Shown here piece after piece: positions 1 through 63,613 of a DNA stretch of 64,000 nucleotides (positions within the stretch are counted from its first letter, which is position 1; each line of letters starts with the position of its first letter). The stretch is taken from positions 96,867,604 to 96,931,603 of the forward strand of contig NC_092383.1 of the NCBI RefSeq assembly GCF_030028105.1, given 5' to 3'. The notes beneath the pieces were generated by a model. The model did no database searches and was not told the DNA's origin. It was given only the letters and a program-made list of their open reading frames with translations. Position numbers and translations under genes: made by a program. The DNA comes from Mobula birostris. Lineage: Eukaryota.

Positions 1-407
1 GGGGAGGGATGGAGCCAAGAGCTGGACAGGTGATTGGCAAAGGGGGTATGAGAGGATCATGGAACAGGAGGCCTAGGGAGAAAGAAAGGGGGAGAGGTGA
101 AGCCCAGAGGATGGACAAGGGGTATAGTGAGAGGGATAGAGGGAGAAAAAGGAGAGAGAGAAAAAGAATATGTATATATATATATAATAAATAATGGACG
201 GGGTACGAGGGGGAGGAGGGGCATTAACGGAAGTTTGAGAAATCAATGCTCATGCCATCAGGTTGGAGGCTACCCAGACGGAATATAAGGTGTTGTTCCT
301 CCAACCTGAGTGTGGCTTCATCTTGACAGTACAGGAGGCCGTGGATAGACGTATCAGAATGGGAATGGGATGTGCAATTAAAATGTGTGGCCACTGGGAG
401 ATCCTGC
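1..407 (-). mobile_element. Penelope-like element 3' fragment (GIY-YIG C-terminus and 3' tail), running off the window start
   Basis: DLPVATHFN...LEEQHLIFRLGSLQPDGM is nearly identical to 26225-26640 and matches the PLE endonuclease C-terminus. Confidence 0.8.
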
Positions 408-523
408 CACAGGATACTGTCCAGGGGTTCTGTCCTCAGCCCATCCATGGGGGGTCTGGCATGGTGCATCACTGCAGCATACTCAGTGGGATTAGTCTCC
501 GCAACGACCTCCGGACCAGCAAA
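224..523 (-). CDS. Gene A terminal exon, ITSM TEYAAV plus Penelope-derived C-terminus
   Basis: Acceptor ttcttttgtag, phase 0. FAGPEVVAETNPTEYAAVMHHARPPMDGLRTEPLDSILW continues in frame into QDLPVATHFN...DFSNFR*. Confidence 0.72.
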   Translation of the reverse strand, partial: FAGPEVVAETNPTEYAAVMHHARPPMDGLRTEPLDSILWQDLPVATHFNCTSHSHSDTSIHGLLYCQDEATLRLEEQHLIFRLGSLQPDGMSIDFSNFR

Positions 524-594
524 CTACAAAAGAAACAGAACCTGTCAGCTCTGGCCGATTTAAGGGAAACAGGGACAGGACACACTGTGTCAGG

Positions 595-915
595 AATTCT
601 TGGAGACTGGGAAACATAGCCAGGGAAATAGAGTCCAGGACCCATTCAGGGAGATAGAGACCAGAACACAGAGACAGGACCTGGAGACAGCACACAGAAA
701 CAAGGAGATACAGACTGGGAGCCGTAGACAGGACATCGAGATAGGAAGATACAGACCAGGACCCTGGGACAGGGAGATACAGATGAGGACACAGAGGCAT
801 GGAGATTTAGACAAGGACACGGAAGCAAGGAGATACAGACCAGGACCGGGAGACAAGACACAGAGACAGGGAGATATAGATCAGGACCTAGTGACAGGAC
901 ATGGAGACTGGATAC
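595..915. repeat. Degenerate GA-rich minisatellite (gagatacagaccaggac-like)
   Basis: Recurring ~17-38 nt motifs; expanded in the paralog at 42735-43200. Confidence 0.7.
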
Positions 916-1791: not shown

Positions 1792-1880
1792 CCTGTCATT
1801 CCCCTTGGGGGGCTGCCAGACACTGTGATTCTTCTGCATTCTCTGAAGATTTGTGTAAATGATGCCTGTCTCCGCTTGGT
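1792..1880 (-). CDS. Gene A exon 5, cytoplasmic, ITIM IIYTNL
   Basis: Acceptor ttctgtcccacag, 89 nt, phase 1-0, donor AGG|GTAATG; translation (D)QAETGIIYTNLQRMQKNHSVWQPPKGNDR. Confidence 0.8.
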
Positions 1881-2038
1881 CTGTGGGACAGAAAGGAGAG
1901 GTGACAGGATCTGTACTGAAACCATTCCCCACTTTATCTGAGCCCTCTCTCCCACCCCTGTTGTCACCTCCCTGCCCAGCCCCTCTCCCTCCCTCCCCCA
2001 AATACCAGACTCAACGACAGGGTGTCAGATCCACTTGC

Positions 2039-2173
2039 CTTCAGTCCCTGAAGTTACTTCCCTTCCCTCAGGTCTTCTCCTCCGTGTGACCGTGAGGATC
2101 ACTGTGAGAGCAAAGATCAGGAGGGTCCCCATCTTGAACAATCTGATCACCAGGATCACTGCATCTGGCACTG
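2039..2173 (-). CDS. Gene A exon 4, transmembrane segment
   Basis: 135 nt, phase 1-1, CAGCAG acceptor. VILVIRLFKMGTLLIFALTVILTVT followed by an RRRR stop-transfer; donor GAAG|GCAAGT (GC type). Confidence 0.85.
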
Positions 2174-2329
2174 CTGTAACAGAGAGTAGAAGAGGTTTCC
2201 TAATGAATTCAGTCCTCATGCTCCCAGTGACACAGGATTGATGAATTCACTCCATCCCTCCTCAGTCGGAGAAAACTCCCTGTCACCTCAACACGGTCCC
2301 TCAGTACCCTACAATCACCATCACATAAC

Positions 2330-2830
2330 TCCCCTCCAAACCCCACCTCTCCACCCCGCTCCCCTCCCTTCCAGCATCCCTCAGTCCCTCCAATATCCCT
2401 CAGTCCCCTGAGTCTTCATTCTCTCCGATCACTATCACCTCACTGTCCTCCACCCCACCCCTCCCCTCCAATACCCTTCAATCCCTCCATCCCTATTCCC
2501 TCCAATCACCATCAAATCACTCACCTCCAAACCCATCACCTCCCCTCTGATACCCATCAGTCAGCTCATCCCCCATTCCCTCTAATCAACATCGCATAAC
2601 TGACCTGTACCCCACCCCTTCAATACACCTCAGTCCCCTCATCCTCATTCCCTCTAATTAACATAGCATCACTGACCTGCACCCCTTCCCTCCAATACCC
2701 CTCAGTCCCCTCATCCCCCATTCCCTCTAATTAACATAGCATCACTGACCTGCACCCCTCCCCTCCAATACCCCTCAGTCCCCTCATCCCCTATTTCCTC
2801 CAGTCACTATCAGATCACTGCCCTCCAACC
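2330..2830. repeat. C-rich degenerate tandem repeat in the TM-C2 intron
   Basis: Repeated cctcagtcccctcatcccc / ctctaattaacatagcatcactgacctgcacccc units; shorter in the paralog at 49600-49790. Confidence 0.65.
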
Positions 2831-2959
2831 ACTCCTACTCTATGGTGCTCCCAGTGGGACACAAAAGAACAATACTGTTGACGGACACATTTGGAAATGT
2901 TTGTGACAGGAATTAAGGAAATGGTGGAGGAATCAAAACTGTGATTGCCCATCTTCTCA

Positions 2960-3600
2960 AACATAGAAACATAGAAAACCTACAGCACAATACAGGCCCT
3001 TCGGCCCACAAAGTTGTGCCGAACATGCCCTTACCTTAGAAATTACCTTGGGTACCATAGTCCGCTATTTTTCTGAACTCCAATGTACCCGTCCAGGAGT
3101 CTCTTAAAAGACCCTATCGTATACGCTTCCACCACCATCGCTGGCAGCTCGTTCCACGCACTCACCACTCTCTGCGTAAAAAACTTCCTCCTGACATCTC
3201 CTCTGTACCTACTTCCAGACAGCTTAAAACTGTGTCCTCTTGTGTTAGCCATTTCAGCCCTGGGAAAAAGCCTCTGACTATCCACATGATCAATGCCCCT
3301 CATCATCTTGTACACCTCTATCAGGTCATCTCTTATCCTCCGTCACTCCAAGGAGAAAAGGCCGAGTTCACTCAACCTATTCTCATAAGACATGCTCCCC
3401 AATCCAGGCAACATCCTTGTAAATCTCCTCTGCACCCTTTCTATGGTTTCCACATCCTTCCTGTAGTGAGGTGACCAGAACTGAGCACAGTACTCCAAGT
3501 GGGGTCTGACCAGGGTCCTCTATAGCTGTAACATTACCTCTCGGCTCTTGAACTCAATCCCATGGTTGAAGAAGGCTAATGTACCATATGCCTTCTCAAC
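2960..3600 (-). mobile_element. CR1 LINE 3' fragment
   Basis: YKMMRGIDHVDSQRLFPRAEMANTRGHSFKL C-terminal motif and an aacatagaaacatagaa terminal repeat. Confidence 0.85.
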
Positions 3601-3869
3601 AACTCCAGTCTGTATGTATTCTGTCTGACAGGATACTGTAGAGAACCATTTACTTTATCGGCAACCATCATTTTTTGTATTTTATACTCAGGCCTCTGCT
3701 CATATTTGTCAGCACAGCCTGGGTGAGGAACTGCAGTACATTTTGCAGAAGGTCCACACTGAATCAACTGTGCACTGTTGCTGGAGGGAGGGAGTGATTC
3801 GATTGGAGAGAAGGATTATTTCGGATGGCTGAGGCATCGAGTGGTCAGGGAGGTGGAGGCTGAGCTCGA

Positions 3870-4484
3870 GGAGAGGGGTTACTGAGGGCCAATGTGAGGG
3901 AGCTGGATTAAAATCAGTGGTGATACACTTAGTTAGATCCCACTTGGAGTACTGTGCTCGGTTCTGGTCGCCTCACTCACTCCAGGAAGGATGTGGAAGC
4001 CATAGAAAGGGTGCAGAGGAGATTTACAAGGATGTTGCCTGGATTGGGGAGCATGTCTTATGAGAATAGGTTGAGTGAACTCGGCCTTTACTCCTTGGAG
4101 CGACGGAGGATGAGAGGTGACCTGATAGAGGTGTATAAGATGATGAGGGGCATTGATCGTGTGGATAGTCAGAGGCTTTTTCGAAGGACTGAAATGGCTT
4201 ACACAAAGGGGCATCGTTTAAGGTGCTTGGAAGTAGGTACAAGGGGGGTGTTAGAGGTAAGTGTTCAGACAGAAAGTGGTGGGTGCATGGAACTGCCAGC
4301 AATGGTGGTAGAGGTGAATACAGTAGGGTCTTTTCAGAAATTGTTCAATAGGTGCTTGGAGCTTAGAAAAATCGAGGGCTATGCTGTAGGGAATTTCGAG
4401 GCAGTTTCTAGAGTAGGTACATGGTCAGCACAACATTGTGAGTCAAAAGGTCTGTAATCTGCTGTAAATTTTTTATGTTTTTAT
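3870..4484 (+). mobile_element. CR1 LINE 3' fragment
   Basis: IERVQRRFTRMLPGL...RGDLIEVYK motif and a ttttatg tail. Confidence 0.85.
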
Positions 4485-4565
4485 GAAGCTCCTCTACGCT
4501 GTCCTGTCTCACACTCCTGGGACAGGGGATCTAACTAAATTGCAACTTCTTCCTCTGACACTCAC

Positions 4566-4847
4566 GACATGTGTCCAGATTACAGACGTCCCCCAGCCAG
4601 ACCTGTGCGGTGTCCTCACTGATAGGGTTTCTGGCCTCACACCTGTACACAACATCCTCCATCTCTGCTGTGCAATCAACCCGTATCGTCTTTCCGTCTT
4701 TCCAGATGTGATGGCTGCTGTTGTCTCCTGTAACTTCTCTCCACCAACTAAAGTTGGTGGGGTTGCCAGAGGTCACGGAGCAGGTCAGGGTGACGATACA
4801 GATTCCAGTGATGTTCTGAGGCGTGATGTTTACTCCTGACACGGGCT
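4566..4847 (-). CDS. Gene A exon 3, IgC2 domain
   Basis: 282 nt, phase 1-1. (E)PVSGVNITPQNITGICIVTLTCSVTSGNPTNFSW...YRCEARNPISEDTAQVWLGDVC has four Cys, and the VYEPVS junction and NP-I/V-S motif typical of SLAM C2 domains. Confidence 0.93.
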
Positions 4848-4882
4848 CTGAGGGTGTGAGAAAGAGATGAAAGATGAGTAAA

Positions 4883-7800
4883 TATCCAGCGGGCAACGTC
4901 GGAGTGGGTTGAGAAGTGAGAGGGTGCAGCATGAAAGGGCTTTGGCTCAACGGGCTTTGATGGAGACGGGAAGAGGCTTCCTGCAACCGTTGAGTCTCAT
5001 AGTAACGGAATAAGTTACAGTCTTCTGGTATTTGGTACGAACAGTAGCATTAGAGGTATGCATCTAGGATTAGTGTTGTGCTTGGAGTGCCAGATGTGGG
5101 GACCCTGGGAGACCCCCAGCCTCCCCAAGGATTACATCTGCACCAGGTGCACTGAGATGAGGCTTCTGAAGGACCGTGTTAAGGTGCTGGAGATGGAAAT
5201 AGATGACCTTCGGCTAATTAGGGAAAGTGAGGAGGTGATAGATACTACCTATAGAGAGGTAGTGGATAGCACCCCATGACAGTCCCCCTCAGAAATCAAT
5301 ATATCGTTTTGGATTCTGTTGAAGAGGCAGACCTGACAAAGGAGGACCACAGTGAACGAGACTCTAGCATTCCACCCAGTGCCAAAATCAAGAGAGCAAG
5401 AAGAAATGCGGTAGTTGTAGGGGACTCCATCGTAAGGGGGACGGACAAGAGATTCTGCGAGCCGGACAAGGATACCCGGATGGTGTGTTGCCTCCCTGGT
5501 ACCAAGGTACGGGATGTCTCAGATCGAGTCCAGAGTATTCTGAGGAGAGAGGGCGAGCAGCCGGAAGTCTTGGTACATGTTGGTACCAATGACAGAGACA
5601 GAAAAAGAGAGGAGGTCCTAAAGAAAGATTACTGGGAGCTAGGAAGAAAATTGAAAAGCCGGACCTCCAGAGTAATAATATCAGGATTGCTACCTGAGCT
5701 GCACGCTACTGATGATAAGAATAGCAAAATTAAGCGGATGAATGTGTGGCTAAGTAACTGGTGCAGGGGGCAGGGTTTCAAATTCTTGAATCATTGAGAT
5801 CTATTTTGGGGAAGGTATGACTTGTACAAAAAAGATGGATTACACCTGAACTCAAAAGGTACTAATATCCTGGCAGGATTGTTTATTATAGCTATTAGGG
5901 AGGGTTTAAACTAAGTTGGCAAGGGGAAGGAAACCAAGGTGTTAGGGTCGAGGAAGAGGAAAATAGAAATAAGTCAAAAATACTGTTCAGCAAAGATGGT
6001 AAGAAGGACAGGCTGGTGAATATACAGGGTAATTTGCTGCAAAATAGAAATATAGCAAAATCGACAACAGATACTGATCTAAATGTACTGTACTTAAATG
6101 CACGCAGCATTAGAAATAAAGTGGATGACCTTGCTGCACGGCTGCAGGTTAAAAGATATGACATTGTGGCCATCACCGAGTCATGGCTAAATGACAGATG
6201 TGATTAGGAGCTGAATATCCAAGGATACACAGTGCATAGGAAAGATAGGAAGGTGGTAAAGGGGGTGGCGTGGCCCTGATGGTAAGTAACGATATCAAAT
6301 CAATAGAAAGAAGGACATAGGATCAGAAGAGGTAGAATCCTTATCGGTAGAATTAAGAAATGGCAAGGGTAAAAAGACACTAATAGCAGTTATATACAGG
6401 CCTCCAAACAGCAGTCGGGATGTGGACTACAAGTTGCAGCTGGAAATAGAAAAAGCGTGTCAGAAGGAAAATGTCAAGACAATTATGGGGGATTTTAATA
6501 TGAAAGTGGATTGGGAAAGTCGGAAAAGTAATGGATCTCAGGAGAGGGAGTTTGTAGAATGCCTACAGGATGGCTTTTTGGAGCAGCTTGTCCAGAAGCC
6601 CACCAGGGAACTGGCTGTTTTGGATTGGGTGCTGTGTAACGAACCTCAGGCGATTAGGGAGCTGAAGGTAAAGGAACCCCTTGGAAGTAGTGATCATAAT
6701 ATGATTGAGTTCAGTTCCAAATTTGAAAAGGAGAAGCTGGTATCAGGTGTATCGATATTTCAGTGGAACAGGGGAAATTACAGTGGTATGAGAGAGGAAC
6801 TGGCCCAAGTCAATTGGAAAAGTAAACTAAATGGAGGGACGGCAGAGCAGAATTGGATGAAATTCCTACAAGAAATAAGGAAAATGCAGGAAAAATATAT
6901 TTCAAGAAAAAAGAAAATCATGAATGGAAAAATGGCACAAATGTGGCTAATGAGAGAGGTTAAGGCAAAAATAAAAGCAAAAGAAACGGCGTACAAGGAA
7001 GCAAAAATTAGTGGGAAAAATGAAGACTGGAAGACCTTTAAAAACTTACAGAAAGAAACTAAGAAAGTCATTAGGAAAGAAAAGATGAATTATGAAAGGA
7101 AGTTGGTGATTAACATAAAAAAGGATACTAGGAGTTTTTTTAAATATATGAAGAGTAAAAGAGTGACAAGGGTAGATATGGGACCGATTGAAAATGATGC
7201 TGGAGTAATTATAATGGATAACAAAGAGATGGCAGAGGAACTGAATGAATATTTTGCATCAGTCTTCACAGTGGAAGACATGAGCAATATACCTGATAGC
7301 CAGAGGTATCAGGGAATAGAATTAGGTACAGTCAAGATAACTAGATAGAAAGTGCTTGGGAAGCTAAGTGGACTAAGAATAGATAAGTCTCCTGGCCCGG
7401 ATGAGGTGCACCCAAAGGTTCTGAAGGAGGTGGCTTTGGAGATTGTGGAAGCATTGGAAATGATCTTCCAGGAATCAATAGACTCTGGCATGGTTCCAGA
7501 GGACTGGAAGGTCGCAAATGTAGTTCCACTATTTAAGAAAGGAAGGAGGCAGCAAAAAGACCTATTACAGACCTATTAGTCTGACATCGGTGGTTGGAAA
7601 GATATTGGGGTCAATCCTCAAGGACGAGGTTATGAAATACCTCGAGGTGCATGACAAGATAGGCCGAAGCCAGCATGGTTTCATGAAGGGAAGATCCTGC
7701 CTTACCAACTTATTGGAATTTTTTGAGGTAATCTCGAATAAGATTGACAAGGGAGAGGCTGTGGATGTTGTGTATTTGGATTTTCAAAAGGCCTTCGATA

Positions 7801-8969
7801 AGGTGCCGCATATGAGGCTGCTTAACAAAATGAGAGCCCATGGAATTATAGGAAAGAATTGAAATGGATGGAGCATTGGCTGATAGGCAGAAAGCAAAGG
7901 GTGGGAATAAAGGGATCCTATTCTGATTGGTTGCCGGTTACTAGTGGTGTTCCGCAGGGGTCGGTGTTGGGGCCGCTTCTTTTTACGATGTATATCGATG
8001 ATTTGGATTATGGATTAAATGGTTTTGTGGCCAAGTTTGCGGATGACACCAAGATAGGTGGAGAAGCAGGAAATGTTGAAGAAACGGAAAGGTTGCAGAG
8101 AGACTTAGTCAGTTTAGGAGAGTGGGCAAAGAAATGGCAGATGGGATACAACGTTGACAAATGTACAGTTGTAATTTCGGAAGAAGAAATAATCGGGCAG
8201 ATTATTATTTAGATGGGGAGAAAATTCAAAAATTGGAAGTGCAAAGGGACTTGGGGGTCCTCGTGCAGGATACCCTAAAAGGTTAACCCCCAAGTGGGAT
8301 TGGCGGTAAGGAAAACGAATGCTATGTTGGCGTTCGTTTCAAGAGGAATAGTGTCTAAGAGTAAGGAGGTGTTGATGAGGCTCTATGGGGCATTAGTGAG
8401 ACCTCATTTGGAATACTGTGTGCAGTTTTGGGCCCCCTATCTTAGAAAGGATACATTGATGTTGTAGAGAGATCAGAGAAGATTTACGAGGATGATTCCT
8501 GGAATGCAGGGGCTAACATATGAGGAGCATCTGTCGGCTCTTGGATTGTATTCATTAGAGTATAGAAGAATGAGAGGGGATCTCATAGAAACGTTTCGAA
8601 TGTTGAAAGGGTTGGACAGAGTAGATGTGGAAAGGTTGTTTCCCTTGGTGGGTGAGTCCAGGACAAGAGGCCATAGTCTTAGAATTAGAGGGTACCCAGT
8701 TAAAACAGAGATGAGGAGAAATTTTTTTAGCCAGATGGTCGTGGATTTGTGGAATTCATTGCCACATATGGCTGTGGAGGCCCGATCATTGAGGGTGTTT
8801 AAGGAGGAAATTGACAGGTATCTAATTAGTCAGGGTATCAAGGGATATGGGGAAAAAACCGGAAAATGGAACTAGATGGGTGAATAGTTTAGCTCATGGG
8901 GGAGCTGCGGAGCAGACTCGATGGGCCGAATGGCTTACTTCTGCTCCTTTGTCTTGTGATCTTGTGATC
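4883..8969 (+). mobile_element. Essentially full-length, inactivated CR1 (ORF1 zinc finger/coiled coil/SGNH esterase; ORF2 EN-RT)
   Basis: ORF1 CxxC...CxxC, GDSIVRG and VHVGTND; EN YLNARSIRNK; RT LDFQKAFDKVPH, PQGSVLGP, FADDTK; several stops and frameshifts; (tcttgtga) tail; TAAA on both sides; the empty site is visible in gene B at ~52290. Confidence 0.95.
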
Positions 8970-9544
8970 TAAAGGAGATTCTTGTGGACACCTCGATCCC
9001 CATCTCCCCCATCCCATCCCCAACAGTCCAGAGTAAACTTCAAGCAACGCCCACCTCATTTTTACCCAACGATCCCTCACCCTTCTGTTCATCACTTGTT
9101 GCTGGTGGAAGTTTCCACGTGCTGAGCCCCCTTTCCCAAGCACAATCCACAAACACAATCGACAAACTCTCCATCATGTCCTGTTTATAGCACTCTATTC
9201 CAGGAATTCTCTCCATTTCCATGTCTTTTGTTCCTCCTGTGTGTGGCCCCGGCATCCCTTCGAAACCTGAGTGAGCCCCAGCCCTGACCTGCCCTAATCT
9301 GGTCCAAAACAAGACACAGCCCACTCTATTCTGTCAGTCTCTCAATCTCCACTCTGCCTGCCCAGATTATGATGACGTCTTGAGATCCTGAAACCTGAGC
9401 CATTTCTTACGTCTCTGTTCTCACACCCTCTCCCACCGAAAGCAAGGAGAAGATTCCTCTGACCCGATCCTTCTACCCCACTGGTCTCCACCTTCAGTGC
9501 ATCAACATCTATGCTTCCTGGCCCTTTCAATGAGACTCCATTGA

Positions 9545-10230
9545 ATCATAGAGTATTGCAGTGCCAAAACAAACCCTTCAGTCCATCTAGTCCATACCTA
9601 GTCCCATTGATACTTATCTGGACATCGCCTTCCACATTCCTCCCAATATTTATCCAAATTTCTGTTAGACATTGAAATCGAACCTGGTTCCAACACTTCC
9701 ACCTGCACCTTGTTCCACCCTCTGAGTGAAGAAATTCCTCCACCTTCCCCTATAACTCTGGTCCTCGAGTCCTGATACTCTGCACTCTTTCAATCTTATT
9801 GATACCTTTCCTGTACGTAGGTGACCAGAATTGCACAAATACTGCAAATTAGGCCTCTCCAAGGTCTTGTACAATTTCAACATAACATCCCAACTCCTGT
9901 ACTCAATAATTTGATTTATGAAGGCCAATGTGCCAAAAGCTTTTTTTAATGACCCTATCGACCTGAGACACTACTTTCAAGAAATTATGTTTCTGCATTC
10001 CCAGATCTCTCTATTCTACCGCACTCTTCAGTGCCCGACTGCTCATCATGTACGTTCCACGCTGGTTTACTTCCCAAGGGTCAAGGCTTCGTACTCGTCT
10101 GCATGAAATTCAACCTGACAATTTTTGGCTCATTATTCCTGCTGGTCCCAATCCTGCTACAGGCTTTGATAGTCTTCTTAACTGTCCACTATACCCACAA
10201 CTACTGTCATCCGCAAATTTGATGATCCAC
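9545..10230 (-). mobile_element. Deleted, old CR1 fragment shared by both paralogs (also 52865-53420)
   Basis: IEYRSWDVMLKLYKTL...RPNL motif. Confidence 0.7.
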
Positions 10231-10784
10231 TTACATTCCACTCCCTTCCCTCTTTCTTACATATTTTGACCAGTTTCTCCCTGAGTAACACCTCGCTCTG
10301 CTCTTCTGCCAAACCCACAACTCCCACCACTCCATGTCCCACTCCACTTTCTGGACATCCAGAGGAGGGGGGCTTCATATGAACTTTCACAGTTTCCCTT
10401 CCCTCCATGCAGGGAACCAAAAGCTGAAACAGAGATTGACGAGCACTCCCAATGCAGTGAACTGCACTCAGTGTCCACACGGTGGCCTCCTCTCCACTGA
10501 GAAACCAGGCACAGTGTCACTGACCACCTTGAGGGACATCTCAGTTCAGGCACAATTGTAACTCAGAAGTTCTAGTTGCTGTCACTTTGATTCTCCATCC
10601 TGCTCCCACTCTGACACACTGATTCTGACTTCTGACACTATTCCAGTGAGACCAATGTATAGACAAGGGCCCATCTCCAGCTGGATGAGATGCAGAACTT
10701 GTGGCTCTCCCTCCTTTATAGAGCTGATGTTCAGAACAGGTTCATTGTATGAAAAGTTTTGTTGACTACTGTCTGATTCAGAGA

Positions 10785-11130
10785 GTCATAGAGTCCCAGA
10801 ATACTACAGAACAGGAACAGGCCCTTCAGCCCATCTAGTCCATGCCGATTTCTTAATCCACCTTGTCACATCAACCTGCACCCAAAACGTAGCCCCCATA
10901 ACCATTCCATTCATGTACCTCTGCAAATTTCTTTTAAATTTTGAAATCAAACTCACATACATCACTTCTGCTGGAAGATCATACAACATGCTCAGCACGT
11001 GTCATGAAGGATGTCCTCTTAAACATTTTGCCTTTCACCCTTAACGCATGACCTCTAATTCCACTCTGACCCAATTTCAGTGGAAAAATCCTGCTTGCAT
11101 TTATACGATCTGTATCCCTCATAATTTTGT
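10785..11130 (-). mobile_element. CR1 3' fragment
   Basis: 3' UTR gaacaggcccttcagcccat and a catagag tail repeat. Confidence 0.6.
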
Positions 11131-12329
11131 AAACCTCAATCCCTTTCTTCCCCTACTCGATCCCAGAGGAGGTCTCTGTCTTTAACCCATGTTCATGATT
11201 TTCTATCTTCTGTTTTCTATTTCTCACCTTCTGATGTTCTCCTCCTTCAAATGGTGAACATTAACACTGGGATGGAGGATGTTGTAAGGTGAAGTCACCG
11301 GAGAGACACCAAAGCTGCTGGATATAGAAATGTCTGATTTCCAAAAACAGGCGTCATATTGAGACAATCTTGGAGGAAACAGCCTCCCGATTCAATATTA
11401 CATAATACTGTGACATGCTAAAGGTCAAAGGTAAATGCAGGATAATTGTACCGTTACAATGTACCAACAATGCTTCCTTGGCCCTACATAGATTTTTCAC
11501 CTACCTTGTCGTTCACACCCACACTCCAGACACACAAAATGAATGTTCATCAGAATTGTCTGGTCTGCAATCAACTCCAGTCCACAGCTACAGGAAAAGT
11601 ACTGTTCAGAGCTGCATTTTAAATTCAATCTACAATCCACCTTCATATCTGAAGATGGGTTCTGGTGAGATTAATATTTGTGTATTCCCTAACTACACAA
11701 TACGTCCTAACAGAGGAGAAAAGGTTTCTCAGCCAAACATTGCTGAGTGAGATTATTGTGAATGTGATATTACTGTTAGAGTGAGTCAGGAACCATATTA
11801 CTGTGTGTGAGTGTGCTGTTGTGTCCGTGTACTGTGTCACTCACTGGGACACTATATTCAGTGTAATGAATACACAGGGTCTCACTCAGCACAGCACAGC
11901 ATGAAGGCTGAGGAATAAACACCTTGCTGAGCTCAGACCTCAGTCTAGGGAATTAACAAGCAGTGGTCTGGGAAACTGGGATCCCTGAACATGACAGACC
12001 AGGCCTTTGACTGGAGATACAGTGTGTAAAAACAGATACAGACTGTTCAGGCCATTCACAGCAGGTCCATTCTCCCTGTGTGCTGAGCTCCCTCTGTCTC
12101 AGATACATGAGATTCCCTAATGTTGGTTCGATCCCTTCCGGCTCCTGTCTCAGTCTGGGTGGATATGACAGGTGTGTACTCCAACCTCACACTGACTCAG
12201 CCTCACTACACTGGGACCGTGAGCCCAGATCTGGACACGGGTAGTCAGTGGGGTTCAGTAAACAGGGAAACACACAGGATCTGCCCTCACCCATCCATTA
12301 GGGGTGTTTCAGGGACCGGTCTCACTCAC

Positions 12330-12650
12330 CGTACACCTCCAGTCGCACTGTTGTTTTATATTCATTTCCTGAACTTGCTGCTGTACAAATCACCTCATAA
12401 TCACCAGAGTCCTCTCTCCGTAGATCATGGATTTCCAGACTGACGTTCCCAGGATGAAAGGTTATCCTGTTCTTGTACTGCTCATTACTGAAGTAGCTGA
12501 TGTTCTCTTTCGAGTACTTCACAATCTTGATTCTGGGCGATACCCGAATCCAATGAACCTCAAAGTCTGGACTGACTGGGATCCCAAAAAGTAAGGAGAC
12601 TGACTGTCCCTGAGCTCCGGTCACAGTGGTGGGAGGAGTCCCAGTCCCAG
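12330..12650 (-). CDS. Gene A exon 2, IgV domain of CD2/SLAM type
   Basis: 321 nt, phase 1-1, acceptor ctcctcag and donor G|GTGAGT. Translation ...VTGAQGQSVSL...VHW...SLEIHDLRREDSGDYEV...TTVRLEVY(E) is a V-set fold with the D-x-G-x-Y motif and no B-strand Cys. Confidence 0.93.
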
Positions 12651-14859
12651 CTGAGGAGACAAGACAAGACAGTCCGTAGGTGAGGTCAGTGATAGGAAGA
12701 GGAATCAGACCTGGGAAAATCAAAGACACAGGAGGAAGCCAACCGGCCCATCATGTTGTTCCCAGCCCTGTGAGACAGACAGCACAAAGTTAGTGTTGTT
12801 TCATGCCGAGACACTGGGATACTGGGATACCCTCACTGTGTGTGTGCAGGGGTCAGGAGGTCAACTGATCAGACTCAAGGTGACTACCACTCAGCCAGAA
12901 TTGTCCCTGGATCTGGGTCCCCCAAGCTCTCCTAAAGAGCTGGTTCAGCACAACTTGAGCCATCTCTGGGAAATGTCTCACAGGCTGCACCTCCCGTCCC
13001 CAGGGGGTTCCTTGCACTGGCTGCTCCTGTACACTCTGCACTGTCCGACCTTCACCTGTTGCCTGGACATCCAGTGTCAGGTGGTGAAGGTGGAGTCCCA
13101 GTTAGAGTCTGTCTGTGAGGACTCTGCCACTCCTCATATGACCTTGGAGCAAAGAGGGTGTACAGTCCAATGCTACATTTTCTGTTGTCCGAGAGGGTCA
13201 GAATTCCCTGTTTAGATGGATAGAGGTCTCTAGTGAGCTGCTGTCAGCAGCCTGTGCCCCACCAGGGGTGATTGGCTTAAGAAGGGTGTAAGAGAATCTA
13301 GCTGGATGTGGTAGTGGAGATGGTGTCTAGCCTGACCTACCAGACCAGGCTTCCTGTTGAATAGTTCACGTCTATACATTGTCGTCAACATCCTTTCGTG
13401 CATGTTCTCCCTGTTCCAACTGCTCCCAGTCACCCATTGACCAGATAATCTTGTAGCCAGCTTATCCCCATGGCACCCTGTCAGAGACACCCCTACACCT
13501 GCTTTCCCTATAGTTTTTTCTTCATCACAGTTCTAATGAAGAGTCTTTGACCTGAAATGTTGGCTCTTTTCTCATTCCACAAACGTGTCCTGAACTGCTG
13601 ACTGCTTCCCTCTCCTGTATCATACGATGGAGACAGAGATATTTTAAAAAATGGATCAGAGTGTCTTTGGGGCAGCTTCTCTGGATCTCACCCATTTCCC
13701 AGCCACGTGCGACTGTACAGTGAAGAAAGTGCTTAATACTCCTGCTCGTGGGACCACACAGATCTTTAGTACTCGGCCAGGTACGCTGTCTGGACCAGAC
13801 ACGTTAATGTAGGATGAGTGTAAACAGGTGGTTGATGGTTAGCATTGACCTGGTGGGTTGAAGGTACGAGTTCCCTGCAGTATCTCTCTCTGTCTCACTG
13901 TGGATGGCTTCTCCACACTGAGATGCTGGTCACTGAATGCACTGCAGGGCTGTGCCTGGATCACACTCAATAGTCACTTTATTCAATACAACCCGACACC
14001 TGCCCGTTAACAAATACCAAATCAGCCATCACGTGGCAGCAACTCAATGCTGATCTGCTGGGATTTTCACACACATCAAACTCTAGATACGACAGATAAT
14101 GGTGATTGAAACTAAAAAAATCCATTGAGCTGCATTTCTTTGTGCAGACGTGCCTTGTTTATAAGAAAGGATGGAGGGGAATAGCCAGAGTGGTCCAAGC
14201 TGACAGGAAGGTGACAGAAACTCAAATAACCACACATTACAACAGTGCTGTGGAGAAGAACATCTCTGATGCACAACACCTTGAACCTTGAAGTGGATGG
14301 GCGACAGCAGCAGAAGACCATGAACATACCCTGAGTGGCCACTTTATAAGATACAGGATGTTATCAATAAATGGCCGCAGAGTGTAAAATCTCCCCAGAC
14401 ACTGAGCAACCGGGGTTACATTCGCAAACATGACCACAAACGTCTTAATCTTTGTATTATTACCCAACCCACAAACACATCCTAACGCGGTTAATGGGAT
14501 CAGGGAGGAGTGACTCAGAGTCTGGTGTGGCTTTCAGTTCCTGTGGCACTGGCATTAGTACTGGAGAAGGAGAGCACTGTTCCACTGGGACAGACTGTGA
14601 TCAGACTTCCACTGAATCCAATCACGAGGGAGGTAGACTGAGTTGAAATTCCATAAAACTGTGTTGGGAGGAGGACCCCAATGCTGGGAAATCTGGAAGG
14701 TTGAAGAGGAGCAACAAGGAAGGGGAGAGGGGTCTCGATAAACAGGAGGAGTACAAACTGAATTTGTCTAAACCTAAACAAACTACTGAAGATCATATGT
14801 GAGAGTTCACTCTGCAGGAAAGTGATCATGATGCTTTTGTCATGGTGTCAGAACAACAT

Positions 14860-15070
14860 AGACCTCAACATAATCAAGACAGAAGATCTAGTTGTTGACC
14901 CAAGGAAGTGCGTGAGTGTATACACAACCCTGTCCTGATCAAAACAGCTACTGTAGAGATGGTTGACAGATTCGAAGCAGACATCCTTATCAACAGCATA
15001 GTCTCCAGGTCTCTCCAACTCACACAGTGACCAAGAAAGCACATCAACCCAAATTGAATAAAAGTGATCA
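14860..15070 (+). mobile_element. Degenerate Rex1/L2-type LINE fragment (paralog 62655-62880)
   Basis: LNIIKTEDLVVDPRK...PVLIK...VEMV resembles the Rex/L2 RT C-terminal motif KTKELIVDFRK. Confidence 0.55.
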
Positions 15071-15589
15071 ATACAAACAGAGCTTAACAATCCCTGTGAT
15101 CCCAAATGAGACACCTGCAACACAAAGTGAAAACCTACTTTGTTCAAAGAGAAACAATTAGACACGAAAAGTTCACAGTCCAAGGAACACTACGTACCCA
15201 TGAGGTGACACTGAGAAAATACAATCCACATACAAACTGATAAAATCCCTTTCTTCTTTAAAAACAACCCATAGTTCTGACACAGACACCTTACTCAAGT
15301 TTCCCATTGTGTGTTACATGTTCTTTCTAACACACACATACACACACACACACTCACACACACACACATATGCAAACACTCACACTCTCTGCTCTGTTGT
15401 TCCATTTTGTGATCCGGGTTCACAAACACTTTGCTGAGCTCGTGTCAACATGACGAGCAGGAGCAGGAAGCGGACGTGCTACCACTGAACCATACAACAT
15501 ATTCACCTGCCCCTGGCTAAAACATTTTCTTGCCACTTTCCTTGATTTCCTTAATATATAGAAATCTATCAATGAAAGAAGAATTTCTA

Positions 15590-16310
15590 GATCACCGGAG
15601 AATCCCAGTGATTTACCACAGTATGCCGGCTGGCTTCGTAATGACCTGGTATGGGAGCACCATGTATTTGAACAGAAGATCCTACAAAATGTAGCGAATT
15701 CGTTCCAGTACATTGCGGATAAAACCTTCCCAGCCACTGAAAGCATCTACGTGAAACATTGCCATAATCAAAGATCCTCACCAGCCAGGCCATGCTCTTT
15801 TCTCACTGCTGTCATCAGGTAGAAGGTACAAATAAAAATTAAATTAATTTATAAATAACTAAATTAATAAATTTATAAATGTGGTTGGCGGATTGATGTT
15901 TTTTTATAGAAGCTTGTATGGCATATAGTTCTGGGTTTGTGCTCCAAATGGGTTTTTTTTCCCCTGTTTTTTTTGTTATTAGGGTTTTTTTTCTGTTTTA
16001 GTTAGTAGGGGTTCTTTTTTTCTTTATTTTTCCATAAAAAGAGGCTTTAACATTTTGTTTTTTTATTATTATTGATATACTGTAAAAAAAAAGAAGGTAC
16101 AAGAGCCTCAGGACTTACACCACCAGCTTCAAGAACAGGTTATTTATTGATATTTATTTATATTTGTATTTGGACAGTTTGTTGTCTATTGATCCTGTTT
16201 ACAGTTCATGTTCTATAGATTTGCTCAGTATGCCCGCAGAGAAAGAATCTCAGAGTTGTATGTGATGACATATACGTACTCTGATAATAAAACTTATTTT
16301 GAACTTTTTG
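15590..16310 (+). mobile_element. Rex1/L2-type LINE 3' fragment, interrupted by an L1 tail
   Basis: WYGS...EQKILQNV...QYIADKTFP motif and an aataaaac...tttgaact tail; paralog at 63820-64000. Confidence 0.7.
15832..16091 (+). mobile_element. 5'-truncated L1-type 3' UTR insertion with 11-bp TSD
   Basis: T-rich UTR ending in an A-run; agaaggtacaa at 15821-15831 and 16092-16102. Confidence 0.75.
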
Positions 16311-17269
16311 AATAGAGACCCAGTCTATTACCCACACTAGTGACATGTCAGACCCACCACATCAGAAACCAGTCTGGTGAATCTTTGTGATAATTCCCCT
16401 TCAGCTTCCATTTCTCACCCATTATCACAGATTCCAACATTCTCCCCACTCCCAGTGTCAGCTGGGGAGATGTGTGGTTCCCAGTTTTCTCTCTCTCCCT
16501 CCTTTTTGAAACAGTCTGTAGGATCCATTCCTGAAACTGTAGAGTTTGCCAGATGATAACCAGAAAGTTGAGTAACTCTACTGACACCTTGCCACAGACT
16601 CCGGGATGGAGATCATCAGGCCTGTGTCAATTATCCATTTTCATGATGTTATTTCATCATTGACGCTGAATTGATTTTATTTCTACACTTGCATTCAACA
16701 CTTGTCTATCCTGTATTTCTGGCAGGTTTTTGTGTGTTCCACAAAGACACACAAAAAGCCATGGTTATTTCCTCTACTGTTCCTTCATTCCCCATTACAA
16801 AGACCCACGTCTGTCTGTAAGGGAACTACAGTTGTACCTGCTGCTGTGTTTGTTTCATGTCCTGATTCCGGCTCTCACAGTCTGTCCTTAATATCCTTCA
16901 ACTTTCCATTTTCGCTTTCTTCAACGATATATCTGTTACCCTTTGCTGTGTTCGTAATCAATCTCAATCCTCAGGCTTATGACTAATTCTGCAGGTTAAC
17001 AACCATTTCGGGCAATGATATCAGGATTTTATTTATCATTCTCTCTCACTGCTTGTATGTCCAATATTGTGATTTGGGCTATTGACAGATCGACAGTCTG
17101 TCTGCCGAGAGAGAGTGAAAACCAGCACTTGGGACCAAAAACGAGGATGACTGTTAACAATTTCCACTCTCTTTCTCCATTCCAGTGCCCCTCCACCACT
17201 TCCTGCCCCCACCATCCACCATTCCTACAGCGATTCCCCATGAGGATCTTTTCCCATGAAACATCTCCT

Positions 17270-18495
17270 TTGCGAATATGATTCTATTGCTGTTTCTGAC
17301 CATGCACCGTTGAAATTATTTATTAACTTAAGGGATACATCTACTAATTCCCTTTGGCGATTTAATACCACTTTGCCTTAAGGTTCAGATTTTGTTAGGC
17401 TTATTGATGAACAGATTAAGTTTTCCTTTACAACGAATTTCACGGATGATATTTCCAGTGGGATACTCTGGGATACTTTTAAAGGTTGTAATCCTTTGCA
17501 GAAGGGATTAATAGCAATAATTTATGATATAATTATGAAATTACAGCCAGATATATCTGATAAAATCAAAAATGAATGGGAAAGGGAACTTCAACTTTCC
17601 CTACCTATAGAGATATGGGAAAAAATTTCAATTAGTTAGTACTTCTTCTATATGTGTAAAACATACATTATTACAATTTAAAGTAGTACACAGAGCTCAT
17701 ATGTCCAAAGATAAACTAGCTCATTTTTATTCCCATATAAACCCTACTTGTGACAGATGTCACTCTGAAGTGGCTTCTTTAACTCATGTGTTTTGGTCCT
17801 GTCCTCTTTTAGAAAAGTATTGGAAAGAAATTTTTGATATTATTTCAACAGTTCTATGCTTCGATTTAAAACCTCATCCTATTACGGCAATCTTTGGATT
17901 GCCAATGGTAGAACATAGATCTTTGTCTTCTTCAGCCTGTCGAATGATAGCTTTTGTTACTTTAATGGCGAGAAGATCTATTTTATTGAACTGGAAGGAA
18001 ACTAATCCTCCAACTACATTCCAATGATTTTCTCAAACCATATTAGGCTTAAATTTAGAGAAAATTAGAAGTGATATTTTTGACCCTTCGGTTAAATTTG
18101 AAGAGACTTGGAAACCTTTTATGCAACATTTTCATAATGATGTAATCTGACCTTTCCGAATCTTTTTTCTAAATTTAAATTATATAATCAGTGGAGCGGA
18201 GTTAACAACATTATTGAACGTGTCTGATACAAGATGTTGGTCTAGCCCTGTTCTGCTTTTTTTGGGTTTTTTTTTTCTCTTTTTCTTTTGGGGTTTTTTT
18301 TTGTTTATATATATATTTTCTTGCTTTTTATTTTTTTTTAATGTTTAATCTCATTATGAGTTTGGAAGTCTTCTATATCTATGTTACTTAAAATTCATTT
18401 TATATATGCTGATGAACATTTTTCCAATCTCTTTGTACCAACTTTGTTACTGAGTTTATAATTTTGAAAAATTAATAAAAAGATTTAAAAAGAAA
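17270..18495 (+). mobile_element. Internally deleted L1/Tx1-type LINE
   Basis: The EN end (SDHAPL, WRFN) joins directly to the C-terminal region with the CDRCHSEVASLTHVFWSC zinc motif, then a T-rich UTR and A-rich tail. Confidence 0.8.
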
Positions 18496-18889
18496 GAAAC
18501 ATCTCCAGACCAGGACCCAGTTCCAGGGATCTGAGGGGTCCTGGGTCATATGTACTTAATTCCACATCTCTGCCAATCCTTCTCAATCCTGTGAACAACT
18601 GATACCTGTTTCTCAAGCTCCATTTCCAGAATTAGAAGCAGGATGGTTCTATGGCTACAGAAAGAGCCAATTCTCTGTCCCAATACCCACCAGTAACCAA
18701 ACTTTTCTTGCCCTCTATGTCAATCTCGTGTTTTATGAAACTGTGACAGGAGAAGCAGCTTCACTGTGCCCAACCTACACTCTCCTTGCCCTGGTAGTGT
18801 GGGATCCAGAAATACCCGAGTCCAGAAAGTAACAGCGAACCTGGAGAGAAGGATGTTAAAGACAAAAACTTGCTCTGAACCAAACTTAC

Positions 18890-18944
18890 AGAGTGAGGCG
18901 CAAAGAGTTAGCCAGCAGGAGATCAGCAGATGCCTGGTGTTCAT
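18890..18944 (-). CDS. SLAM/CD2-like receptor gene A, exon 1 (signal peptide MNTRHLLISCWLTLCASL)
   Basis: ATG with A at -3 (ACAATGA), 18 codons with a hydrophobic core, then phase-1 donor T|GTAAGT; the phase matches the IgV acceptor. Confidence 0.8.
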
Positions 18945-20989: not shown

Positions 20990-23900
20990 CCATAAGATAT
21001 AGGAACAGAATTAGGCCATTTGGCCCATCAAGTTTGCTCTGTCATTTCATCATGGCTGATCCATTTTTCCTATCAGCCTCAATTACTTGCTTTGCCCCTG
21101 TATCACTTCATGTTTTGATCAATGAAAAATCTATCAACCTCTGCCTTAAATATACATAAAGAATTGGCCTCCACAGCTGCCTGTGACAACAAATACCACT
21201 GATTCACCACTCTCTAGCTAAACAAATTCCTCCTAAACTCCGTTCAAAGAGAATGCCAATCTATTTTGAGTCTGTCCCCTCTGGTCTCCAAAACTCCAAC
21301 CAAAGAAAACATCCTCTCCACAACCATTCTATCGAGACCTTTTACTATTTGGTGGTTTTTAATTAGGTCATCCTTCATTCTTCTAAATTCCATTGACTAT
21401 AGGGCCAAAACAATCAAGCGCACTTCATATGACAAGCTGATTTATCCTGGAATAATTTTCTTGAACCTCCTTTGTTGCCTCTCCAGTTTCAGCACATCCT
21501 TTTTCAGATAAAGGTCCCAAAACTGCTCTCAACACTCCAGGAGTGGTCTCACCAGGGCTTTATAAATACTAAACATTTTATCCTTGTTTTTACGTTGTAG
21601 TCCTTGTAACATGAATGTGATCAGACTCAACTTACAACTTAAACTTTAGGGAATCCTATACAAGGACTCCTAAATTTCTCTGCACCTCAGATTTTTGTAT
21701 TTTCTCTCCATTTAGAAAATCATCAGTACTTTAATGTCTTCAACCAAATTTGCATGACCATACACTTCCCAACACTGTATTCTATTCACCACTTCTTTGC
21801 CCATTACCTAATCTGAGTTCTTCTGTAATCTCTATACTTCCTCAAAACTACCTGCCCTCCACCTATCTTCATATCATCTGCAAGCTTTGCGACAAATCCA
21901 TCAATTCCACCATCCAAATCCTTCACATATAATGTAAAAAGAATTAATCCCAACAGAGACCCTAATGGAACATCAATACTCACCGGCAGCCAACCAGAAA
22001 AGGCTCTCTTTATTCCTACCCTTTGCCACCTGCCTATCAGCTACTGCTTTAACCATGCACGAATCTTTCTTGTAATACCTTGAAAACACATTCTTAACAG
22101 TTGAATCCAACATCTTCCCGACCACTGAGGTCAGACTAATTGGTCTGTAATTTCCTTTTTTTCTGCCTCTCTCCCTTCTTGAAGTGTGGAGTGTCATTTG
22201 CAATTTTCCAGTCTTCCAGAACCTTTACAGAATCCAATGATTCTTGAAAGGTCATTACTAATGCCTCCACAATCTCTTCAGCCACCTCTATCAGAAGCCT
22301 GGGGTGTAGACCATCTGTTCCAGGTGACTTATCCACCATCAGACCTTTCAGTTTCCCAAGGACCTTCTCTGTAGTCGTGGTAACTTCACACATTACATGA
22401 CCCCTGATATCTGAAACTGCCACCACATTGTTTGATTCTTCCACAGTAATACTGATGCAAAATATTTATCCAGTTTGTCTGCCATTTCCTTGTCCCCAGA
22501 ACAGTATCATTCTCCAGTGGCCCAATATCCACTCTCACCTCTCTTTTACACTTTATGGTCCTGAAGAAATTGTTGGTATTGTCTTTAATATTATTGGCTA
22601 GCTTTACTCCATATTTACCTTCTTAATGACTTTTAGTTGCCTTCTGTCCAATTTTTTTGCTCTATTATAAGCCCTTTCCTTGGCCTTCATGTTGGCCTTG
22701 ACCTCCCTGGTGAGCCATGGTTGTGTCATCTTGCCTTTAAGATACTTCTCACTCTTTGAGACTTATATATCCTGAGCATCTGAATTGCTTTCAGAAATTG
22801 CAACCGTTGCTTCTCTGCTGTCATCCCTACCTGTGATTTTTTTTTCTCAAATCATTTCTGGACAACTCCTCTCTCATACCTCTGTGATATATTTTACTCC
22901 ACTGTTATACTGAAAGATCTGATTTTAGCTTCTCTTTCTCAAATTTTAGAGTGAATTTGACTACATAATGATACCTTACCCCTCAGGTTTCTTTTACCTT
23001 AAGCTCTCTGATCAATTCTGGTTCATTGCACAACACACAATCCTGAATAGCTGATCCCCTACTGGGCTCAAACACAAGCTGCTCTAGAAAGATATCTGGT
23101 ATGCTAGAAATTCCCCCGCTTGGAATCCCACACCAACCTGATTTTCCCAATCTACCTGCATATTGAAATCCCTCATGACGACTGTAACATTACCCTTTTG
23201 CAGCCATTTCCCATCTCCCATTGTAACTTGTAGACCACATCCTTACTACTGTTTGGGTGTCTATAGATAACACCCAGTAGGGTGTCTTTATCCTTGCAGT
23301 TCCTTAGCTCTATCCACAACAATTCAACATCTTCTGACCCTATGTCACTTCTTTCTAATGATTTAATTTCATTTTTTACCAACAAAGCCATGCCAGCTCC
23401 TCTGCCTTCCTGTCTATTCAGTGATGCCTACAATATCATATTTGCCAATCTGTAACTGTGCTACAAGTTTTTCAACCTTATTCCATATACTGCCTGCATT
23501 TAAATTTAATACGTTTAGTTCTTTATTCACCTTTCTCGATTTTGAACACCTTTTACATTACAACTCTTCCTGTTGTCTGCAATTATTCCCTATCATGTAG
23601 CTCTCCCTGCTAGGAGTCTCACTACACATTGCATCTGTTTGCATCTGATAGGGCTTATCTTCAGCACTATCATTCCAGTTCCCAACCCCCTGCTGAACTT
23701 GTTTAAACCCATCTAAACAACTCTAGCCAACCTGCCCACGAGGATATTGGAGACCCTCGGGATCAGGTGTAGCCTATCCTTTTTGTACAGGTCATAGCTG
23801 CCCCAGGAGAGATCACAAAGACCCATAAATCTGAACTCTTGCCTCACGCTCCAATTCCTCAGCTACATATTCACCTGCCAAATCATCCTATTCTTACCCT

Positions 23901-25915: not shown

Positions 25916-26167
25916 CAACCACAGTCTCTGTCCATCTCTTGCTCTCTCCCTCTCTCAGACTCCATACCTTTACCCACAACCTCTCTGTCTATCTCTCTTG
26001 TCCATTGATTCTCCCTCTTTCTCATAGTCTCTGACCACACATCTCTTTCAATGTACCTTTAATTTCTCTTCAGAAGTCTTTGTGTCCACGTTCCTCTCTC
26101 GGTTTCTTAGTCTGTGTCTCTCCCTCTCTGTCTGCATTTTTCCTCAGTTCTCAAGATCTCTCGACTC

Positions 26168-26216
<49 letters not shown>

Positions 26217-26224
26217 CACTGAGA

Positions 26225-26855
26225 AAGCAGGATCTCCCAGTGGCCACACATTTTAATTCCACATCCCATTCCCATTCTGACATGTCTATCCATGGCCTCC
26301 TCTACTGTAAAGATGAAGCCACACTCAGGCTGGAGGAACAACACCTTATATTCCGTCTGGGTAGCCTCCAACCTGATGGCATGAACATTGACTTCCCTAA
26401 CTTCCGTTAATGCCCCACCTCCCCTTCGTACCGCATCTGTTATTTATTTATTTATTAATTATTATTATTAATTTTTTTCTCTCTCTCCTTTTTCTCCCTC
26501 TGTCCCTCTCACTGTAACTCCTTGTCCATCCTCTGGGTTCCCCCCCTCCCCCTTTTCTTTCTCCCTAGGCCTCCTGTCCCATGATCCTCTCATATCCCTT
26601 TTGCCAATCACCTGCCCAGCTCTTGGCTCCATCCCTCCCCCTCCTGTCTTCTCCTATCATTTTGGATCTCCCCCTCCCCCTCCCACTTTCAAATCTATTA
26701 CTAACTCTTCCTTCAGTTAGTCCTGACGAAGGGTCTCAGCCCAAAATGTCAACTGTACCTCTTCCTAGAGATGCTGCCTGGCCTGCTGCGTTCACCAGCA
26801 ACTTTGATGTGTGTTGCTTGAAATTCCAGCATCTGCAGAATTCCTCGTGTTTCTG
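26225..26855 (+). mobile_element. Penelope-like element 3' fragment with decayed hammerhead
   Basis: GIY-YIG C-terminus with stop at 26408-26410, a pyrimidine-rich tail and a hammerhead core at 26719-26755. Confidence 0.82.
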
Positions 26856-27030
26856 TCCATGAAAGGGAGGTTGCTTTGTGTGACAGACTGGGCTGCACTC
26901 ACAGCTCTCTGCCATTTCATATTCAGAGCAGTGGCCGTACAAAGCTGTGATGCATCCAGACAGGATGCTTGCTACGGTGCATCTATAAAAAGTGGTGAGT
27001 CTCACTCGGGTTGTGCCAAGTTTCCACACC
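26856..27030 (-). mobile_element. Rex1/Babar-type LINE fragment
   Basis: FYRCTVASILSGCITALYG motif. Confidence 0.7.
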
Positions 27031-42130: not shown

Positions 42131-42589
42131 ACTTCATTCAACCAACACACATCAAAGTTGCTGGTCAGTGCAGCAGGCCAGGCAGCATCTCTAGGAAGAG
42201 GTACAGTCGATGTTTTGGGCCCGTTTTGAGGCGTACCAGGGGGCTACACATTTATTTATGAACTGCTGTATGAGTCGAGGGTAAATAGATCAATAATCTA
42301 CAGGGGACATGTTCCCACAAAATCTGTTCCCCTGCAGAAAGCTAGTGACAACTGTTAAACCAATATTCAATACCTACAAAGCACAGCAGGAAAGAGGGGC
42401 CAAGTTTTTGTCCTGTAGACCTCAGCCCAACGGTGGGACACGGAGGACCCCAGTATCACCCACCAGTCCATATTCAATCCCCCCTGAGAGTCTGTGCCGT
42501 TCAGCAAGAAGAAGGATCAGCGTAGACTGTAGGACACTGTCCAGGAGCTCTGTCCTCAGCCCATCCACGATGGGGTCTGGCACGGTACA

Positions 42590-42643
42590 TTACTGCTTCA
42601 CAGTCAGTGGGGTGAGTCTGCAAACTACTTCCGGACCAACAAA
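42590..42643 (-). CDS. Gene B terminal exon, frameshift-truncated (FVGPEVVCRLTPLTVKQ*)
   Basis: Acceptor ttctgttgtag paralogous to position 524; a net -1 indel relative to gene A leads to TAA at 42590-42592. Confidence 0.6.
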   Translation of the reverse strand, partial: FVGPEVVCRLTPLTVKQ

Positions 42644-63129: not shown

Positions 63130-63181
63130 CTCTCGCACACACACACACTCAGAGACAGAAACACCACAAACTGACACACAG

Positions 63182-63226
<45 letters not shown>

Positions 63227-63350: not shown

Positions 63351-63613
63351 ATCACCTATCACCTGTCCAGCTCCTGGCTCCATCCCTCCCCCTCCTGTCT
63401 ACTCCTATCATTTTGGATCTCCCCCTCCCCCTCCAACTTTCAAATCCCTTACTCACTCTTCCTTCAGTTAGTCCTGACGAAGGGTCTCAGCCTGAAACGT
63501 CGACTGCACCTCTTCCTAGAGATGGTGCCTGGCCTGCTGCGTTCACCAGCAACTTTTATGTGTGTTGCTTGAATTTCCAGCATCTGCAGAATTCCTGTTG
63601 TTTGTGTTTTTAA
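63351..63613 (+). mobile_element. 263-bp 5'-truncated Penelope-like insertion with 13-bp TSD
   Basis: Matches 26605-26855; actcacactctct at 63338-63350 and 63614-63626; absent from gene A at ~15385. Confidence 0.82.
63470..63505 (+). ncRNA. Minimal type I hammerhead ribozyme (Penelope type)
   Basis: Stem I AGUC/GACU, core CUGACGA, stem II AGG/CCU, GAAAC-GUC with palindromic ACGU; predicted cleavage after 63501. Confidence 0.78.

Follow-up and report, generated by a model that had tools for sequence, protein, structure and literature searches.

The last exon of gene A, a SLAM-like receptor gene of Mobula birostris, continues in frame into the 3' end of a Penelope-like element (PLE), which also provides the stop codon. 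The window, i.e. the whole analysed stretch of DNA, is 64 kb in length and contains a tandem paralogue of gene A, gene B, the homologous exon of which is free of the element. The history that we favor, and that is probably correct, is that a 5'-truncated PLE landed in the sense orientation at or very near the stop codon of gene A, that the native tail was kept, and that the extension is neutral or mildly harmful and occurs at most in a minor long form of the receptor.

Structure of gene A and of its last exon

Gene A occupies 18944..2025 of the minus strand. When spliced as in RefSeq, its translation was identical in 278 of 278 residues to XP_072133949.1, the M. birostris 'SLAM family member 7-like' protein (RefSeq name), and the gene span on record, 16,920 bp, is exactly the length of the interval 18944-2025, which identifies the window as M. 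birostris DNA. On the minus strand the signal-peptide exon (18890..18944, MNTRHLLISCWLTLCASL) is followed by the IgV exon (12330..12650; V-set, E 2.7e-12), the IgC2 exon (4566..4847; Pfam ig, E 2e-5) and the TM exon, which begins at 2173 or 2199 and extends to 2039 with the GC donor CTGAAG/gcaagt. The RefSeq CDS reads through this donor to ...SGTEGKWI and ends at 2025 with the stop codon 2027-2025, leaving out both cytoplasmic exons: cytoplasmic exon 1 (cyt1; 1792..1880 on the minus strand, DQAETGIIYTNLQRMQKNHSVWQPPKGNDR, with the phase-0 donor GACAGG/gtaatg) and the last exon (523-224, minus strand).

The domain order of the SLAM/CD2 family, IgV, then IgC2, then a single TM segment, was found in gene A. 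This build is shared with the receptors SLAMF1-9, CD48 and CD244, as are a cytoplasmic ITIM-like motif, IIYTNL, and an ITSM, TEYAAV. In the SLAM/CD2 family, the phosphorylated ITSM binds SAP/EAT-2. The RefSeq names met here, 'SLAM family member 5/7/8/9-like' and 'CD48 antigen-like', point to the same family; the batoid matches to the IgC2 ORF query are named 'SLAM family member 5/8/9-like' and 'CD48 antigen-like', and the closest ones are from Mobula. In contrast to the SLAM/CD2 receptors, the Pfam SLAM and 2B4 matches of gene A were sub-threshold, a mammalian counterpart is not assigned one-to-one, and the annotated product is without the ITSM tail. The TEYAAV motif is located at 487-470 in the last exon, agrees with the ITSM consensus TxYxxV/I/L (PMC3958483) and would be encoded solely by the long splice form, which is not annotated.

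A GC donor follows the TM exon in both genes, GAAG/gcaagt in gene A (2025-2046, minus strand) and GAAG/gcgagt in gene B (49300-49320, minus strand). The RefSeq CDSs of A and B read through it to ...G(K/E)WI and a stop, giving short-tailed products with Arg/Lys in the TM segment. Read-through versus splicing at this donor could be a real switch between long and short (inhibitory and activating) isoforms. The intron that separates cyt1 from the last exon in gene A contains tandem units of ~60 bp at 1210-1540 on the minus strand (cactgtc.c.cacaca..ggttactggggt...), and the array is found also in gene B at 48513-48765. LINE-type RT-like ORFs were observed at 3046-3519 (minus strand) in the introns of gene A and at 21800-23430 (minus strand) in the intergenic region.

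The last exon of gene A opens at 523 behind a polypyrimidine tract and a good AG acceptor (ttctgtttcttttgtag/TTT), and the phase-0 splice 1792/523 preserves the frame. From 523 to 224 the minus-strand frame is open over 99 codons (FAGPEVVAETNPTEYAAVMHHARPPMDGLRTEPLDSILWQDLPVATHFNCTSHSHS...DFSNFR, then stop). In the order of reading it comprises a host-derived part (FAGPEVVAETNPTEYAAV...LDSIL), a TGG codon, 60 PLE codons and a stop. The host-derived part (410..523, minus strand; FAGPEVVAETNPTEYAAVMHHARPPMDGLRTEPLDSIL) is identical in 38 of 38 residues to the C-terminus of the paralogue P0163. The TGG (Trp) codon (407..409, minus strand) is the point where the paralogue proteins end, and its last base is the first one aligning to the element. 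The 60 codons (227..406, minus strand; QDLPVATHFN...DFSNFR) belong to the C-terminal half of a PLE endonuclease (EN), and the TAA at 226-224 is the element's own ORF stop, found also in copy 2 of the element at 26408-26410. The 3' untranslated tail of the PLE copy fills 1..223 (minus strand) and, by comparison with copy 2, continues for ~220 bp more past the window start.

In the self-comparison of the window, 407..1 aligned to copy 2 at 26227-26640 (plus strand) with 89.9% identity over 414 bp, and 615..411 aligned to gene B at 42737-42531 with 78.6% identity. The repeat/host junction was placed at 407-411 because both alignments end there, and the predicted junction sequence of the fused tail is ...DSILWQDLPVATHFN. 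The coordinates, the junction at ~407 and the continuation in frame without a stop that had been proposed in the initial annotation were thus confirmed by the 99 open codons and the self-alignments, and the stop codon does come from the element, as proposed there. The Pfam search with the 99-residue last exon gave no match, the PLE fragment being too partial, and an exact look-up of the 81-aa ATG ORF gave no record.

The homologous last exon of gene B (42531..42643, minus strand) differs from that of gene A by two 1-nt indels and reads FVGPEVVCRLTPLTVKQ followed by a stop. It represents the empty site, since the sequence past 42531 is unrelated, and the earlier statement that gene B has no insertion was correct. 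Fragments of the PLE 3' tail were detected at 42137-42220 (minus strand) and 41856-41955, ~310 bp downstream of the empty site, one in the sense orientation and two more inverted; they stem from other insertions than the one in gene A.

Identity and copies of the element

The full HMMER scan of the 60 repeat-derived residues against 1.84 billion representatives resulted in 166 matches with the best E of 7e-23. The relatives that extend upstream carry a canonical PLE endonuclease, e.g. P0004 with ...GVIYCIQCSQCGLLYIGETQHRLGDRFVEHLRSVRHNRQDLPVATHFNSASHSHS...; this protein, the closest full-EN relative, shows also ...GVIYCIQCSQCGLLYIGETQHRLGDRFVEHLRSVRHNRQDLPVATHFN.... The full domains of nine relatives were aligned with two window copies, and Pfam GIY-YIG (PF01541) was detected in seven of the nine, with the best E of 4e-5. 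The gene A fragment, in which the domain is present from LPVATHFN onward, aligned to the C-terminal half of these EN domains, PF01541 being matched by their N-terminal half, and the assignment of ~60 residues to a PLE GIY-YIG endonuclease was in this way upheld. A search of the PLE EN domain profile against PDB sequences matched no GIY-YIG structure.

PLE endonucleases typically have a CxxC motif between GIY and YIG together with R, H, E and N residues (Craig et al., PMC8557442), and the full-EN relatives carry all of these. A CCHH zinc finger is present in the relatives (VIYCIQCSQCGLLYIGET, then H..H in HFNS.SHSHS), and only its His half is left in the gene A copy. In the distant sea urchin relative P0132, GIY-YIG was accompanied by a sub-threshold RVT_1 match (17 bits vs the cutoff of 29.6). 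The likeness to EN+ PLEs (Neptune and Penelope-Poseidon clades; PMC8557442) includes the HFN..H..H, EEQ.LI and GMN blocks in the EN C-terminus, a candidate hammerhead core in the 3' tail of another copy, and 5'-truncated, microsatellite-adjacent copies. P0004 has a C-x3-C-x2-C linker, which is absent from Penelope/Poseidon (PMC8557442), so that the batoid family is probably Neptune-like and not Penelope in the strict sense. No full-length copy of the family was found among the relatives recovered or in the 64-kb window.

Unlike full EN+ PLEs, the gene A copy comprises only the last ~630 bp of the element and is without RT. Its EN fragment starts right after ...EHLRSVRxN, which means that GIY, CxxC, YIG and the Arg are missing, and GMN has Ser in place of its Asn. 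An active nuclease of this type has both the GIY and the YIG strand and Arg, Glu and Asn as catalytic residues, a set that is incomplete in the fragment. As the GIY, YIG, CxxC and Arg parts are missing, the predicted polypeptide cannot be an active nuclease and cut DNA.

Three PLE copies are located in the 64-kb window; their 3' end is common, their 5' ends are different, and two of them adjoin (CA)n. The 5'-truncated copy 2 (26227..26856, plus strand) adjoins (CA)n, is 90% identical to the gene A copy and defines the extent of the element. Copy 3 (63355..63607, plus strand) consists of the 3' tail only and is situated next to (CA)n in the region of gene B. It contains the candidate hammerhead core CTGACGA-N13-GAAAC-GTC at 63474-63497, which is mutated in copy 2; the gene A copy leaves the window upstream of the hammerhead position. 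The Rfam searches of the window at the gathering threshold and of copy 2 at loose thresholds gave no hammerhead and one chance sRNA match. The (CT)n/(CA)n microsatellites adjoining copies 2 and 3 lie at 26150-26226 and 63121-63226. The homologous (CA)n in the region of gene A, 15322-15368, carries no insertion, and copy 3 was therefore inserted after the A/B duplication.

A bias towards microsatellites has been described for PLE copies, and the pattern of the three copies is consistent with 5'-truncated target-primed reverse transcription combined with this bias (PMC8557442). A non-autonomous element with a fixed 5' end was considered and rejected, as copy 2 starts a few codons earlier, with LRK ahead of QDLPV, and the truncation of copy 3 is at another point.

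The native C-terminus and the loss of its stop codon

Longer relatives were recovered with P0152 as the query. The M. birostris paralogues P0163/P0215 and P0166 (XP_072135114/5 and XP_072133947) splice from the TM exon to cyt1 and further to the terminal exon, and they end with ...FAGPEVVAETNPTEYAAVM(H/Q)HARPPMDGLRTEPLDSIL, i.e. ...RTEPLDSIL. The codon where these proteins end, known from the protein sequences alone, corresponds to TGG (409-407) in gene A, which stands one codon before the CAG GAT... common to copy 2. The initial annotation had assumed that the transposon replaced the original C-terminus. This did not prove correct: nothing has been replaced in gene A, because the paralogue proteins end exactly at its TGG codon. 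By this comparison the native tail of gene A is complete and has lost its stop, so that 62 residues are predicted to follow it: Trp, Gln and what remains of the element frame.

The cyt1 donor is spliced in P0163, P0164 and P0166, whereas in P0217, an isoform of a paralogue that counts against a fused product, the reading continues past this donor to the position equivalent to 1723. In Hypanus sabinus, the relative P0168 terminates with ...TEYAAVMYRASPSRGWPEDRAPGQYPVV, a translation of the same DNA in the other frame; the A-type tail of Mobula is therefore a frameshift product downstream of the ITSM. Compared with Hypanus and the other paralogues, the A-type tails are frameshifted after the ITSM and the B-type tails before it, the gene B-type ending (FVGPEVVCRLTPLTVKQ and stop, as in P0164) being due to the loss of 1 nt upstream of the ITSM. 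In frame 2, gene B reads ...GQCPTVYADPSSC and a stop at 42501-42643 (minus strand), and the Tyr codon of its TVYADP coincides with the codon at which the Hypanus relative stops (after ...GQYPVV). This Tyr is therefore improbable as part of an ancestral second motif.

The Hypanus ending ...GQYPVV and the gene B sequence cct aca gtc tac may both go back to cct gta gtc ta- as the ancestral sequence. With this ancestor the shifted A-type frame would read CTG TAG, which would explain the stop of the paralogues unaided. If the Hypanus Val is encoded by gtg, TGG could be ancestral and the paralogue stops derived. The similarity between gene A and P0163, located elsewhere on the chromosome, is uneven: 100% in the signal peptide, IgV and the last-exon tail, 97% in IgC2, 26 of 30 residues in cyt1 and 75% in the TM exon. 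Such a mosaic suggests gene conversion or exon shuffling among the members of the cluster, and any parsimony argument on the stop codon is weakened by it.

According to the favored history, target-primed reverse transcription placed a copy of the PLE in the sense orientation, of which, owing to 5' truncation, only the last ~630 bp were retained. The insertion point would be in the last exon of gene A, at the stop codon or at most 1-3 bases from it. The TGG codon may have arisen in two ways: either the junction falls inside the former stop codon and replaced a part of it, or the element was inserted just past the stop, which a later A-to-G change abolished. In both cases the reading would continue through Trp-Gln and the remaining endonuclease codons to the element's own TAA, with the ITSM TEYAAV and the rest of the native tail untouched by the insertion. 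The order of these events is inferred from the alignments. The appended piece is most likely a neutral or mildly harmful by-product of the transposon in a fast-evolving, partly decaying tail exon. The annotated product of gene A is the short form ending after the TM exon, and the appendage, if made at all, would be confined to a long splice variant of minor importance.

Possible translation of the fused frame and its significance

All donors and acceptors of the long form of gene A are intact and in phase, and cyt1 is highly conserved among the paralogues and with Hypanus. Since the splice sites are intact, and since the annotation shows splicing in paralogues that share the GC-donor context, gene A could have a long isoform. 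No AATAAA or ATTAAA was found on the gene strand from 2100 to 1, so that the transcripts probably continue through the tail exons. Because the fusion is in the last exon, nonsense-mediated decay is not expected. A protein carrying the fused tail was not found in the protein collection, and a word-indexed search of proteins of 55-173 aa, queried with the host-derived half of the tail, gave no candidates.

The strongest alternative to the favored history, with a probability only somewhat short of even, is that the tail exons are no longer coding. Gene A would then encode a short-tailed, possibly activating receptor with charged residues (R, K) in its TM segment, ending with KWI, the exon-plus-PLE frame would be part of untranslated RNA, and the fusion would exist only on paper. 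The short RefSeq end of the CDS recurs in the gene B counterpart P0153, and P0151, P0152, P0155 and P0167 likewise stop after the TM exon, these models coming from three species including M. hypostoma and Hypanus sabinus. The frameshifts, stop loss and transposon insertion in the tails and the absence of the fused protein from the collections searched agree with this reading as well. However, the short RefSeq models are Gnomon predictions, cyt1 and the ITSM are intact in addition to being conserved, and the intact splice sites and the probable coverage of the tail exons by transcripts favor a tail that can still be translated. Production at a meaningful level of the fused receptor proposed in the initial annotation is rather less likely than not.

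By chance, a sense insertion is in frame in one case out of three. In copy 2, situated in non-genic DNA, the element frame is likewise open over the 60 codons. With these frame odds, the open frame of copy 2 and three copies in 64 kb, the in-frame fusion is not beyond the chance expectation.

Co-option of the appendage is very unlikely. It would require that the 62 residues are translated and have acquired a selected function, for instance in the access of SAP/EAT-2 or of a phosphatase to the ITSM, or in receptor stability. The frame open over 60 codons is in agreement with such a role. Between the gene A copy and copy 2 there are 11 nucleotide differences in this frame, with 5 synonymous and 5 non-synonymous codons, which is somewhat above neutral drift in synonymous changes. 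Yet the frame is open to the same extent in the non-genic copy, and much of the synonymous excess may predate the insertion, when the element was active. The appendage also has no tyrosine or other known signalling motif, its catalytic Asn is already Ser, and it is not in RefSeq. The 5:5 ratio was rejected as a sign of selection, being based on too few sites and confounded by the pre-insertion evolution of an active element. We infer that the appendage is without function.

Equally improbable is the view that a base-calling mistake or a rare allele accounts for TGG at 409-407, the true stop being as in the paralogues and the element lying in the 3' UTR: TGG is a single base from TAG or TGA and two paralogues stop at the equivalent codon, but there is no N, no homopolymer at the site and no low-quality sign in the window, and the spliced CDS agrees with RefSeq throughout.

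The same PLE endonuclease tail ends or lies within RefSeq models of unrelated batoid genes, namely ATP synthase subunit C3-like (ATP5MC3-like) in Hypanus, neuromedin-U receptor 1 (NMUR1) in Rhinoraja, RECQL5 and VKORC1L1 isoforms in Hemitrygon, and NYAP1-like in Narcine. Judged from these models, it is a recurrent pattern, whether real or an annotation artefact. Gene A is a further instance of a well-known kind of event, 3'-end exonization of a transposable element, with which it shares a sense retroelement fragment in the last exon, the in-frame reading and a new stop from the element. Unlike in the usual exonization, where a cryptic exon arises from an intron, it is the element's own protein frame that would be read in gene A. 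That the long form is translated, that the appendage alters signalling by the adjacent ITSM, and that the batoid PLE tails are a lineage-wide source of new C-termini and not annotation noise is a very improbable combination.

If the long form is made, gene A would provide a clean, datable case of a retroelement that landed on a stop codon and lengthened an immune receptor beside a signalling motif, and it would join the few documented cases where a PLE's own protein frame is read within a host protein. The repeated incorporation of PLE endonuclease tails in batoid gene models deserves to be flagged. The locus chiefly shows the rapid decay of the cytoplasmic tail in an expanded SLAM-like family of rays, by frameshifts, stop loss, transposon insertion and short read-through forms.
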